Part shown: in pieces, positions 1 to 5,779 of the stretch
How positions within the stretch are numbered: the stretch's first letter is position 1
Layout of the letters: each line of letters begins with the position of its first letter
Source of the DNA: Hyaloraphidium curvatum SAG 235-1
Lineage: Eukaryota > Fungi > Monoblepharomycota
NCBI GenBank assembly: GCA_025558095.1
Contig: JAIVFI010000014.1
Location: 248,001 to 312,000, forward strand
Reading direction: 5' to 3'
DNA length: 64,000 nucleotides
The notes under the pieces: generated by a model
Database searches by the model: none
What the model was told of the DNA's origin: nothing
The model's input: the letters and a program-made list of their open reading frames with translations, nothing else
Made by a program: the position numbers and the translations under genes

Positions 1-3000
1 AAGTTCACGGCGGAGCCCTTGACCCCGGCGCGGAGGCAGGAGTACCTCGACGCTACGCGCAATGGACACCTCGCGCAGGCCATGCTGGGCGTGCTGTCGG
101 CGATGGAGGCGGCTGCCGGGCTCGGGGGCAACGAGTTTATGTCGCGCGTCGAGGCGGTTTATCGCACGACTACGATCGGGGGTTTGGAGCCGCGGCACGG
201 GAACCCGGCCGACGCCAATGGCCGCTGGGTCTACGGGGACCTGTCCGAGATCGTGGACCCGCGGCTGCCGACGACCGAGATCTGCGCCAACTGCCCCAAG
301 GGCGACGTGGTACTGGGCTCCCGCCGCTACTTCCTTAACGAGACCAACAGGATCCTCTTTACCGCCCTGGACACCACCGCTTTGGACCGGCTTCGAGGTC
401 TGCTGGCCGAGACGAAGGTAGGCTCTCCTACGCCATGCACGCGCGCATGTCTGATTCGCGCACGGCGGTGTCGCAGGACGAGGCGACAAGGACGGCCATC
501 GGCAATGACATCGCCGTCATCGAGTTCGAGCTGCAGAAGCTGCACGCCCGCGACACGCAGCCCGCCGACTTCGACGATGCGCACTGGCCCAAGGCGATCC
601 GCGCACGCGCTCGCGTGATGGGCAACCTGGTCTTCACGGATGCCAGCAAAGTGTGCCCCCTCCTATTCGTGGGCATCGCGCGCACGCTGCCTCGGATGCG
701 TTTCCTGACAGCCCTTTTCCGCCCAGATCGACGGCGACGGTGATTGTTGCTGTTGCGACAGCATGTCGAAGATGATGGGAGGTGGCGACTGGGACGCCGA
801 CGTTGCGAGGCGCGCTCTGCTCCTTCACCGCCGGATCCAGCTGGAGCACCTCCGGCTGGAATTCGCAGCCTTCCGCCCGACCTTGGTCATCGGCCTGGGG
901 TCGAACATGGCCCGCATGCTGTGCTCCACGAGCGGAAGCCCCCACCTCCCCAAGCGCGCGCTGCCGTTCGCCACCGGCGGCATCCTCAACGTCGAGGTCG
1001 GCGTGGGCGGCTCCGATCTCGCGACCGCCTTCCAGCTCGCGGTCGCCCCGCACCCCGTGGCGTGCGCACTGCTGCCCTCCCATCTGGCCGACTCGGTCAC
1101 CGCCCTCTGCCTCCTCCCGAACCCTGCCAAGGCGGACGCCGGCGCGGTGTTCGACCCGTCGTCGTACTCAGCGGCGGCGGCACTCAACGCGGCATCGCAG
1201 CTCGCAGCGCACACCATCTTTCCGCAGGTCTTTGCGTTCTGGCCCGAGCGGGGCACCGAGGGCGTCACCCACCTCGAGTCGCTCCCCGCGGCTCACCAGC
1301 CGATACCTGAGTCCTTTATTCCGAGCTGGCTCATTTCGACATGCGCAAACATCTTCACCTCGCGGTTCAAGGAGAAGTTCAAGGACCGTTTCCAGGCCTA
1401 CCTCGAGATCTTTGCCGCAAATGGCCTCGGCGACCTCGCTTTCGGCAAGTCCCGTTCGCACCTGGACTCGGCCACCCGCGCGCGGATCGGGCAAGGCGCG
1501 CCCGCACCGCCGGCAGGCCTCCTGGGCGCGCTGGCCTACCGGGCGCGGTGTCTGCTGGTCCCGCGGTCCGGTCAGGCGGCGTCTGCTGCGGTCGCCGAGG
1601 ATGGGGATGAGGTTGCCGTGCTGCTCGAGGACGACGGGCAGGATGCGGTGGCGCTGACGCCGCGAGAGAGCGTGTCCGCCATCTATGGCCTGAAGCCGCA
1701 GGTTGCGGATATCGTCAAGGATCTGGATGGCCTCGGGCGGCATTTCTTGGACCGTTCGTCGGAGAGGACGCGCCCCAGCACCCAGTCCCTCCTGGATGCC
1801 GCGCGCGACCTTCTCTTTGGAGCTGCGGCCGGCGCCGCGCGCCTCCGTCCGATCGCCGACATCCGCCGCGACGTCGGGCTCGGCGAGGTTGCGTTGACGG
1901 ACTTGAAGCTGGACGATAAGCTTGGCTTTGTCCGGAGCGCCGTCGTGGCCGGGGACCTGAACCAGCGGCTCACGCCGAGGCTCCACGCGGGGGATCGCTT
2001 GTCGAGCCTGGACAAAGCCGTATTTGGGAAGTGGCTCACCGCCTACATCGGCTTCCTGCTGCGCCAGGGCGAAGGCGGGAAGGACGAGTTCGGTGCTCCC
2101 GTGTCGTTCGGCCTGGCGGACTCCCTGGACCACTGCAGGATCCCTGGGGCGGCCCGCCGTGGAGTTCTGGCCAAAGTCAAGGAGTGCCTCCGGGACCAGG
2201 ATCCCGGCGTGAATCTCATAGGAGGGGACGTGTCCACCCTCCTCCGCAACTACGCCTTGCCAGGCGCCGCGGCGCTCGGCGCCGGCTCCCCCCGAGATCG
2301 ACTTCATCGTGAATCGAGCAACTACATCGCGTCGAACGGTGTCGCCACCAGGGTGCTCTTTGAGCACCCGCATCATACCAAGGGCTTCAACCGGCTGGGT
2401 GGAGCGCGCAGTGCGGCCAAGGTAATCGCATGCTCGCAGCCAAGTTGACGGTCCGCTGACGGTCGCACCACCTTCCTCGCAGCCGGGTCAGGGTGATCTG
2501 CCTCAAGATGCCAAGTGGGTGACTGGTTGCGTCGGGTGCCCAAGAGGAAGGGGCTGCGATCGCCAGTATCCGAGCTGCAGGTGAGCTTTGCCCCTGTCAA
2601 TTGGTGCCCATTTCCTCCTATCCCTAACTGTCTGCTCACCCGTAGCGCCTGCACCAAAGTGAATCGACAGTGCTTCTACGAGATGCCGGTGTGCGAGTGC
2701 TGCGACAAGGCGCGTCGCGTCTGCGACGGCAGAATGCCCTCGTGCGGGTAGGTTCCCGTCTTGGACACCTCCTCGCACCTCGCGCTGACTGATACGCTTT
2801 CAAACATCAGGCAGTGCACGTATGCAGGGGACACCTGCTCGTGGGACCTTTTGACTGCCCAAGGAAGGCGGAAGGCCGGCGACGCCGAGGACTTTGCCTG
2901 GATCTCCCACGCGCACCACCGCACCATCCCCGAGCTCGCCGGCTGGCATGTTCCCGGCGCCGGCGCCTCGTCGACGCACGCCTTCATGCGTGGCGTGGTG

Positions 3001-4136
3001 CTCGAGGGCGAACTCTGCACCAGCTCGGATCCCGGCCCCCGGAACGGCATCTACTTCCAAAAGATGAAGCAGGGCGACAAGGACGTCGTCTACTACTTCG
3101 ACCACAAGCCAAGCGTCGAGACGGCCACCGACGTCGCGTGCAACATCGTGGCCGCCTCGGTTGACCCGGGTGAGAAGGGCGACACCATTTCGGTCACCGC
3201 CTTTGTCCAAGGGAAGGACGGCAAGCTGGAGGAGCTTACGCTCGACCGCTTGTTCCGGCCGCTGTCGTCGAAGGGTTACAGGGCGAAGGACGAGGCGGCG
3301 CGGCCCGACGAGTGGTGGACGGAGCACCAGGACCTGTCGACGCTGATGGCTGAGGTGTCGAAGTCGCCGTACCCCGTCGACGGCATGCTCGCAGGTGGGC
3401 ATTGACGAAGCTGCTCTGGCTCGTGGTCGCTCACCCGCTCCTATATTCGCCGATCCGCCTCGCAGCGTCTGCGTTCCTCAACCACGCCGGCCCGCTCCTC
3501 GACCACGCGCAGAGCCACCACTCCCAGCTCGCCAAGGAGTACCGCTTCCGCGAGAAGCAGGCCCGCCAGGCGGCCATGAAGAACTGGATCCTCGCGGCCG
3601 GGGAAGCGGTGTGGCGCCAAAAGGTCTACCTGGAGGCCTTCAACGCCCACGTGGAGAAGGAGCGGCCGAAGCTCGGCGAGCCGCCGCCTGACCGCGACCA
3701 CGCGCGCAAGATCGAGGAGGGTGCGCACGCGGCGGGCAGGGACGCGGTGGCGGCGATCGAACGGATCCCCAACCCCATCGTCCTGTGCGGTGCCGGCCAG
3801 GGCTCGGGCTCCCGCATGCCGTACGTCGGCAGCATCGCCGAGTTCCTCTCCCGCCACTTCCTCGTCTTCCTGCTGGGCGAGTACTTCACCTCCCAGCTGT
3901 GCCCGACGTGCCTCGCCAAGCTCGAGCCCAACCCGCTCCAGCGCGGCGACGTCGTGCACAAGCGCTGTGCGACCTGCAAGCGCAACCCCGACCGCGACGG
4001 CTTCGACGGCGAGCTGGTTCTCAACAAGAACCGCTCCGCCACCCTCTGCCTCGTCAGGATCTTTCTTCACATCGTCGCCACTGGCGACCGGCCCGCAGTC
4101 TTCACCCACCGGGCCGCCTCCCGCAACGCCGGATAA
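1..4136 (+). CDS. Large spliced Fanzor/TnpB-like RuvC protein with UDG-like N-terminal region and two Zn(II)2Cys6 clusters (5'-partial, >1246 aa)
   Basis: Exons <1-417, 477-650, 727-2421, 2483-2580, 2646-2747, 2811-3394, 3466-4136. All six GT-AG introns (59-76 nt) keep the frame; total 3741 nt. Motifs: YIASNGVATRVLF (TDG-like, ~2330), RuvC-I SVDPG (D at 3163), bridge-helix-like YRFREKQARQAA, RuvC-II GEYFTSQLCPTC (E at 3879), CATC zinc ribbon, RuvC-III position NKNRSA (4023-4040), C-terminal GDRPAVF. Confidence 0.8.
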
Positions 4137-4305
4137 ACCTACCCGGCACTTATCTGAATGAGTGAGTCTCGCGCCCGTCGATGGGGTATCAGGGTGTTGC
4201 GAGCTTTTGATGGGGGCAGTTAACTGACGGAAAGGCCCCCCTCCCCCGCAATTATCTCTCCAGCATACACGTCGAGCAGTAGTGAGCGCGAGATCGAGAT
4301 AACCG
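4125..4305 (+). ncRNA. Candidate Fanzor omega-RNA scaffold region
   Basis: Immediately 3' of and overlapping the stop codon. Stems: GCCGG..CCGGC across the stop, GGGGGC(4212-4217)/GCCCCC(4235-4240) enclosing palindrome CAGTTAACTG, and TTATCTC/GAGATAA (~4252/~4296). Position matches known Fanzor/TnpB omega-RNAs; expression not shown. Confidence 0.35.
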
Positions 4306-4480: not shown

Positions 4481-5779
4481 CTCTTCCACAGCAGCTTTCC
4501 GGCCACGGATAGGCTCGTATCGAGTACAGCGAGGCAACTGCGTGTATTGTGCATCCTTCTACGCTACATCAGGATCTTCCGACGCCGTCCAGGTGCCGCC
4601 CAGGTGGAGGTGGAAGGTTGAGTTGTCGCAAATTGCCCGGAGCGTGGTGTCGAATTGAAGTCCCGCGCGGTTGCTGGACGGGAGGTGGGAGAAAGTCGAC
4701 ATCGGCGAAGTCTGGCAGGTGCGACAGAGCGGTACTCGCAAGTGCACTTGGGAGGTGGCGTTCGGCTGGGAGGGGAAGAGTGAGCACAGTCCGAAGGAAA
4801 GACAGCAGCGCGACTCACTTGGAGAACCACGCAAGCTGCGAACGAAGTCACGAGAACGCTGGAAAGAAGTACAAGCTCACCTAGAGTAGTAGGCCACGTT
4901 GTCGAACTCCCGGAATCTGGAGCGGAGGAGAGGAGGAAGGTGAGGGTAGCGTGAGCAGGAGTCAACCAAAGCACGCGCGTGAGGCGGACCGGGCTAGCGA
5001 CATTAGCACCGACTGCAGTCCATGTAGAAAAGTGCCGGTATTGCTGGGCTTGACGGCCGAGGGGCAACGGAGTCGTCTGGAGAGAGAACGCCGTGAGCGA
5101 CCCGCCGAAGGAGACCGCCCCGCAACTCGGAAACCCACCGTGCGCGCCGCCCGAAACCGCGGGACGCTGCAGGAGATGTCATGAAAAAGGCGGAGCCGTT
5201 GTCGACTGCGGCGCTCTCGTGGCAGTAAGGTGTCCGCGGTGTCTGAATTCGAAGTGTTTTTGAGAAGCGGAGCTTTCCCGACTTCCTTCTGACACGTGCG
5301 TTGACGATCCGAAGCAAAGACGAGACCAGACTGGAGCTCAAGTGTGCGGAACTGAAGCAATGAATATCATTCAGTCTCACATTTCGCTTCGGCTCGCCTC
5401 CCCGTCGCCCAGACTGAGTGCCCGTAATCGCGCTCCCGCCAACACCTGGTCGCTCAGAACCGCGTCGCTTCGGTGTGCAGAATGCTCATCGACTATGCCT
5501 CGGCTTTGTGCTGTCTCAAACAGGGAGCTTTGTGCAGCAGCGGTTCCAGTCTCCCGCCGAAGTTGCCCGCCGTTCGTTCGGGAGTCAGCCCCCCAATCAG
5601 ACACGATTACAACTTCAGTCCAAGCACGCGGCGCGCGGGACAGGGTCCCATAGTCGTCCCTGAGCTGCAGTTCTTACTGCCTGATTCGGTGGCGCGATTC
5701 GAGGCCCGCAGTTCGGCGCCATCGGTCGACCCCATGAACGAGTTGCCCTGACTTCAGCGCACCGCCTGCGCAACGGGGA

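Follow-up and report, generated by a model that had tools for sequence, protein, structure and literature searches.

Uracil-DNA glycosylases (UDGs) share an α/β core of four parallel strands in the order 2-1-3-4 that is flanked by helices, and the iron-sulfur-bearing enzymes of family 4 contain a 4Fe-4S cluster whose ligands are a Cys-x2-Cys pair before strand 1, one Cys after strand 2 and one Cys before the long helix. In poxvirus D4 the UDG fold serves as processivity subunit of a DNA polymerase, i.e. it tracks along DNA independently of catalysis. Here, we describe a conserved domain from the fungus Hyaloraphidium curvatum (genome of 31.9 Mb in 55 contigs), which is encoded at the left end of a DNA stretch of 64,000 nucleotides (the window; C14:248001-312000) and is part of a very large protein with a TnpB/Fanzor-like C-terminal region. 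Based on sequence comparisons and structure models we estimate the probability that this domain has a UDG-superfamily-like fold, combined with the role proposed below, to be about 0.5.

Typical TnpBs exhibit a RuvC-III motif reading Asp-Arg-Asp-x-Asn or Asn-Ala-Asp-x-Asn, and inactivated TnpBs have been recruited to other roles in prokaryotes (PMC10691335). In the literature searched, the domains added to Fanzors or to their viral and eukaryotic relatives are of the helix-turn-helix and transposase kinds only, and a full-text search retrieved no natural fusion of a Fanzor and a glycosylase.

As compared to family 4 UDGs (Thermus, Sulfolobus; TIGR00758, PF03167), the H. curvatum domain agrees in the order in which strands and helices are predicted, has a helix, a strand with Leu-Gly at its end and a short helix in succession, where alone a sequence match can be measured (P about 0.01-0.03), and displays a β hairpin followed by His-Pro, and invariant Cys residues before candidate strand 1, after candidate strand 2 and before the long helix. 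It differs from family 4 in that it contains neither the Gly-Glu-x-Pro-Gly motif A nor a conserved Cys-x2-Cys pair, has an Asp at the place of the strand-2 Asn, gives no match at the level of hidden Markov models (HMMs), has ~300 instead of ~190 residues due to a helical hairpin and other insertions, and is embedded in a protein of ~2,500 residues. TDG/MUG (family 2) and UdgX provide the top Foldseek rows for our two structure models, but with E values of 0.2-0.8 and template modelling (TM) scores of about 0.2, and a profile test against 80 MUGs yields a z of about 0.6; by eye, the helix start Asn-x-Thr-Asn-Arg loosely recalls the Asn-Arg-Phe-Trp helix of MUG/TDG. Poxvirus D4 is a precedent for a UDG fold acting as DNA-tracking module inside a larger machine, although it has kept a canonical family-1 sequence and activity and no sequence relation to our domain is seen. 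Finally, the C-terminal 430 residues share the RuvC-I Asp, the RuvC-II Glu with the zinc ribbon and a RuvC-III-like motif with Fanzor/TnpB, whereas the RuvC-III Asp is replaced by Asn, the Pfam score is under the cut-off and the protein has three to five times the length of the Fanzors described.

Gene structure, copies and selection

All strings quoted in the sequence-only reading, which had proposed a UDG-like domain at the N-terminus of a Fanzor, are found in the window, in the order stated there and in a single spliced reading frame. Window positions 150-1110 are coding and distributed over three exons (A, B and C), with GT-AG introns that are conserved in the paralogs. The gene is organized as follows:

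1-417, + strand: 3' end of the long exon (exon A), containing the first part of the candidate domain; frame L005:5601-8417, tblastn to four other copies
418-476, + strand: intron 1, 59 nt, phase 0, GT..AG, branch site of the CTGAC type; position shared by the C8 and C31 copies
669-726, + strand: intron 2, 58 nt, phase 0; donor after Leu-Phe codons, conserved in paralogs and used in the NCBI model P0001
1108-2421, + strand: rest of exon C, ~430 conserved residues of no recognisable family; 35% identity across paralogs, ratio of non-synonymous to synonymous substitution rates (dN/dS) 0.19
2483-2810, + strand: two short exons with Cys-rich, Zn2Cys6-like clusters, plus introns; from reading the sequence, same segment in P0003
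2811-4136, + strand: TnpB/Fanzor-like C-terminal region in two exons, intron 3395-3465, stop 4134-4136; Pfam PF07282, hhalign, hmmsearch

The long exon begins at position 5601 of the upstream DNA (L005, C14:240001-249500), i.e. 2,400 bases upstream of the window, and its GT donor at 418 is conserved in the paralogs; the gene models P0002 and P0003 are also spliced at the position of intron 1. The donor of exon B had been placed at 651, but the actual donor is 669, as indicated by the codons of a conserved Lys-x-Cys-Pro-x-Leu-Phe stretch, which exon B gains in this way, by the same junction in two divergent paralogs and by P0001. Downstream of intron 2 the gene contains four more introns before it ends with the stop codon. 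The region 1108-2421 has no match in any library searched (Pfam, PDB), with relatives being found only in H. curvatum.

The location of the domain at the N-terminus did not hold up, as the domain lies in the middle of the protein. The frame runs past the left edge of the window, the same exon being open for 939 codons in L005, and is preceded by further exons with more conserved coding blocks. In total, there are ~1,300 additional codons upstream of the window and the whole protein comprises ~2,500 residues. As the frame continues upstream, the apparent N-terminus is an artefact of the window edge. P0003 (KAI9027716.1), a full-length paralog model from NCBI with 2,449 residues, contains all blocks in identical order and has the candidate domain at residues 1,170-1,500. 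According to this gene model the candidate domain and the TnpB-like region are located in one polypeptide, with ~730 residues, including two zinc clusters, in between.

The genome harbours five copies of the domain:

C14: window copy
C5: copy with 91% identity, truncated at the 5' end and frame-shifted in exon B
C8:328k and C31:137k: two copies, about 36-44% identical to the window copy
C8:86k: P0003 copy

The paralogous copies have their intron positions in common. Over the domain, dN/dS is 0.11-0.13 (C14 vs C5) and 0.24-0.48 (C8 vs C31), i.e. the domain is under purifying selection and is a selectively maintained coding sequence. The 5' truncation and the frame shift of the C5 copy are what one would expect of a decaying pseudogene or a mis-assembled repeat with functionless motifs, but there is only a very slim chance that this explains the locus, given that the window copy is open through all exons and has intact splice sites, that dN/dS is well below 1, and that the same blocks are kept in paralogs with 35-45% identity.

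When 1.84 billion representative proteins were searched exhaustively with HMMER and a four-paralog profile of exon C, three proteins were returned, all from H. curvatum, and a word search with exon C retrieved the C5 paralog alone. Hence, within the databases searched, the family is restricted to H. curvatum. This restriction is a direct observation, and so are the coding status of the domain, its splicing pattern, its conservation under purifying selection and its position in the protein.

The C5 copy (C5:738836-743640) has 92-97% DNA identity to the window copy over a segment that begins 299 bases before the window and extends to window position 4247, and everything further upstream is missing. 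This alignment consists of two pieces with an overlap of ~260 bases (window 3587-3845), suggesting that one of the copies contains a short duplication.

In the upstream exons (L005:3459-5994, C14:243459-245994) there are blocks that, by eye, recall motifs of XPG/FEN-type (PIN-like) nucleases, i.e. an acidic Gly-x-Asp/Glu-Ala-Asp and a Ser-Ser-Asp-Arg-Asp-Leu-Leu. They are conserved in P0002 and P0003, and a Pfam search with them gave no match.

A candidate UDG-like fold

The blocks of the candidate domain and the quoted strings, all of which could be located in frame, are:

172-192, + strand: motif-A candidate (quoted string); examined in paralog alignments, low pLDDT (predicted local distance difference test) and coil in model 1
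283-294, + strand: Cys-x2-Cys (quoted string)
289-369, + strand: invariant Asn-Cys-Pro-Lys, hydrophobic strand ending in Gly-Ser/Thr-Arg, Asn-x-Thr-Asn helix start; present in all copies, most conserved block of exon A
328-369, + strand: strand-plus-helix string (quoted string)
370-620, + strand: helical hairpin insertion of ~60-70 residues, split by the intron at 418-476; pLDDT 83-93 in model 1
621-650, + strand: strand ending in Asp (quoted string)
621-668, + strand: candidate strand 2 (Gly-Asn-hydrophobic-Val-Phe-x-Asp), then invariant Cys-Pro; conserved in all copies
745-756, + strand: run of four Cys; invariant columns C7-C10 of alignment A1
790-921, + strand: long helix, strand ending in Gly-Leu-Gly, short helix; present in all copies, the sole segment with a measurable match to family 4 UDGs
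850-921, + strand: helix-strand-Gly-Leu-Gly string (quoted string)
961-1107, + strand: Phe-x-Thr-Gly-Gly, β hairpin, Ala-Pro-His-Pro, Pro-Ser-His-Leu-x-Asp-Ser helix; invariant A1 columns
1039-1056, + strand: Ala-Pro-His-Pro string (quoted string)

The Ala-Pro-His-Pro string, which had been assigned to motif B, is invariant in all copies (A107-P110 of A1) and follows a predicted strand; a match of two residues is, taken alone, weak evidence. Phe-x-Thr-Gly-Gly (961-981) as well as Ala-Pro-His-Pro with the subsequent helix (1039-1107) are kept in all copies, and the whole region 961-1107 adopts a strand-strand-helix arrangement in both AlphaFold models and was aligned to UDGs by the VIA and Atlas searches. 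The strand with the string proposed as analogue of TN-x-x-K is kept in all copies; provided that the by-eye alignment is right, it has an Asp at the Asn position of UDGs. The block at 289-369 is a by-eye candidate for UDG strand 1 and the next helix, whereas the profile alignment picked another register.

The two Cys clusters fared differently. As a pair, Cys-x2-Cys is not conserved, the first Cys not being kept in the paralogs, whereas the four-Cys run is represented by at least three Cys in every copy, if not by all four everywhere (P0003 has three plus two). Five or more invariant Cys are found at places comparable to the Fe-S ligands of family 4 and may hold a metal or Fe-S centre. The suggested motif A at 172-192 was dropped as it is not conserved among the paralogs, which retain Glu-Pro only.

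The structure predictions were carried out on natural paralog models, with the other copies as alignment rows and the exons as separate rows. Model 1 (P0003:1160-1510) has a mean pLDDT of 53.4, with 58-73 in the C-terminal half and values below 50 in the N-terminal half; model 2 (P0002:1122-1305) has a mean pLDDT of 53.4 as well, and candidate strand 2 is modelled as a helix. With the three proteins returned by the exhaustive search no deeper alignment could be made, which is probably the reason for the poor models. The sole confident part of model 1 is the helical hairpin (P0003:1257-1320; helices at model residues 98-129 and 133-158), which matches generic coiled-coil hairpins only. Due to the low confidence of the models, all fold matches are to be regarded as leads only.

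Several of these leads point to the UDG superfamily. With model 1, four of the top 50 Foldseek rows were UdgX and one was TDG (E 0.4-0.8), and with model 2 human TDG ranked 1, 3 and 5 and family-4 UDG 6 and 8 (E 0.2-0.5, TM about 0.23). In a shape search of the ESM Atlas row 1 was a cluster of type-5 UDGs (TM 0.36, 107 aligned), and VIA re-alignment of a low-confidence model gave a UDG-superfamily lead as well. The wide VIA search with model 1 was dominated by the helical hairpin, and the BFVD search returned nothing significant, with a phage family-4 UDG first appearing at rank 10. The order of helices and strands predicted in both models agrees with that of the UDG core.

Leads from sequence were obtained with reference profiles built from public genomes (32 family-4 UDGs, 80 MUGs and 3 family-5 UDGs). 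Using hhalign against family 4, the probability was 2-4% (P 0.012-0.025), and in both hhalign and hmmsearch the best local match was the helix-strand-Gly-Leu-Gly segment. A custom profile-profile test, which tolerates long insertions and was calibrated by column shuffling, gave a z of 2.5-4.3 for the candidate domain against family 4, with other parts of P0003 remaining below 1.6; against families 2 and 5 this test showed no signal. Among the neighbours in a protein-language-model search, the first Pfam-bearing cluster was UDG PF03167 for two paralogs that are ~44% identical, with scores of 0.89 (170 shared features) and 0.88 (155).

A considerable number of results, however, weighs against a UDG relationship. 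The canonical motif A (Gly-Glu/Gln/Ile/Leu-x-Pro-Gly/Tyr at the end of strand 1) is absent and the conserved strand 1 candidate terminates in Gly-Ser/Thr-Arg instead. Pfam, NCBIfam and PHROGs contain nothing relevant for the exons, P0002 or P0003, none of which matches PF03167 at E values up to 1, and PDB sequence searches with exon C, the domain profile (E up to 10) and the C-terminus gave no match. A genome-wide PF03167 scan identified matches at C20 and C30 only, i.e. not at the candidate copies. Moreover, true UDG families detect each other at z values of 9-35 in the custom test, compared to 2.5-4.3 for the domain, and the register of its top-scoring path differs from the by-eye motifs, meaning that the alignment is unstable. 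Both AlphaFold models are poor, with the first half of the domain not folded. None of the UDG results reaches significance individually, and the weak leads depend on one another, as each draws on the same local features of the sequence.

A serious, if tentative, alternative is an unrelated lineage-specific α/β sandwich (P-loop-like, PNP-like, phosphatase-like or new), in which the likeness to UDG motifs would be due to chance and the function would have nothing to do with base excision. The lack of significant similarity to UDG in any standard test, the unstable register and a signal far below that between true UDG families are all in line with such a sandwich, as is the fact that YopH phosphatase, GTPases, PNP and MoCF sandwiches score about as well as UDGs in the fold searches. 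It accounts less readily for UDG being picked first by several differently built methods for two divergent paralogs, and for the His-Pro after the last strand and the Cys beside strands 1 and 2, which are placed as in family 4. Sirtuin-like, deaminase-like and caspase-like folds were also considered by eye and rejected, as their defining motifs are absent or misordered.

Altogether, the UDG superfamily is the best single candidate and is supported by repeated weak leads, although no test is significant and both models have low confidence. Methods of different construction, applied to divergent paralogs, repeatedly put the same pre-specified family, one among thousands, in first place, which is unlikely to be a chance recurrence, and His-Pro after the last predicted strand and Cys beside strands 1 and 2 would fit the UDG core. 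We infer the fold, the metal site and any activity, and the UDG assignment is to be taken as a hypothesis, not as a result. In this hypothesis the domain would be an α/β/α sandwich of ~300 residues that descended from, or converged on, the UDG superfamily, with the iron-sulfur-bearing family 4 as closest type and with an insertion, the helical hairpin of 60-70 residues, behind the first strand-helix unit. Classical uracil excision is disfavoured by the lack of motif A and by the Asp found where the candidate Asn would be, but both would be compatible with a different substrate or a role restricted to binding. Since the domain has kept the His-Pro of motif B but has no canonical motif A, it might bind DNA or a flipped or damaged base, either as non-canonical glycosylase or as catalytically silent DNA-reading module. 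Its partners in the same protein would be the Zn2Cys6-like clusters and a TnpB-derived C-terminal domain with a replaced RuvC-III Asp.

The match of the PF03167 scan on C20 (C20:148610-149044; L024) is a Pfam-positive MUG/TDG-type gene with 55-65% identity to bacterial MUGs. As this identity is unusually high for a eukaryote-bacterium pair, horizontal transfer is possible.

The TnpB/Fanzor-like C-terminus and a possible guided function

The sequence-only reading had also postulated fusion to an RNA-guided targeting domain. The link to TnpB stands: with 17 bacterial TnpBs as reference, the C-terminal 430 residues reach 85% in hhalign (P 6.3e-6) and an i-E of 4e-5 in hmmsearch, whereas the Pfam family PF07282 matches with an E of 0.0086 and 16.7 bits, under the cut-off of 26.3. 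The region exhibits a RuvC-I Asp-Pro-Gly, a RuvC-II Glu with a Cys-x2-Cys zinc ribbon, and a RuvC-III-like motif. The latter reads Asn-Lys-Asn-Arg-Ser, i.e. all copies read have an Asn instead of the catalytic Asp, and the complete Asp-Glu-Asp triad of RuvC is, as judged by motif position only, not present. On the sequence level, the TnpB link of the C-terminus is better supported than the UDG reading of the mid-protein domain.

A word search with the C-terminal 430 residues gave no match and no relatives of ordinary Fanzor size, and in a genome-wide scan for the TnpB zinc ribbon the five giant copies did not reach an E of 1. Within the genome, TnpB-like C-terminal relatives are found at loci that do not match the UDG-like domain (C17:484964-486401, C15:287602-287949, C30:189585-190781, C11:497201-497587, C2:952162-953514 and C13:280824-281201), so that the candidate domain is present only in part of a wider family. 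Three loci pass the Pfam cut-off for the TnpB zinc ribbon (C2:397554-397694, C5:336026-336172 and C2:426655-426792) and are probably ordinary Fanzor-type genes.

The presence of both parts on the same polypeptide raises the idea of a natural RNA-guided base-excision enzyme, i.e. an active DNA glycosylase for which the TnpB-like domain, together with a guide RNA, would find the targets. The supported TnpB link and the invariant His of motif B would be in agreement with this idea, and so would the replaced RuvC-III Asp, which is expected of a module used for targeting only and has a precedent in the inactivated TnpBs of prokaryotes (PMC10691335). Nevertheless, we consider it improbable, as there is no canonical motif A for the activation of water, the UDG fold is itself a hypothesis, the ~730 residues with the two zinc clusters separate the two parts, and the literature search did not find a natural counterpart. 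A shade less probable still is the full arrangement, in which a TnpB-derived, nuclease-impaired targeting domain would be fused to a divergent Fe-S UDG-type glycosylase, with a possible flap-nuclease-like region upstream, to form an RNA-guided base-excision or DNA-marking machine, the natural counterpart of engineered glycosylase base editors.

If both the fold and an activity of the candidate domain were true, this would be the first natural base-excision-type domain joined to a TnpB/Fanzor scaffold. It would imply that eukaryotic TnpB descendants have been recruited for something besides DNA cutting, and guided base excision would have a natural model of compact design. Should the domain turn out to be inactive, the locus still represents a very large, intron-bearing, multi-copy TnpB-like family with several unannotated conserved domains, so far seen in one early-diverging fungus only.

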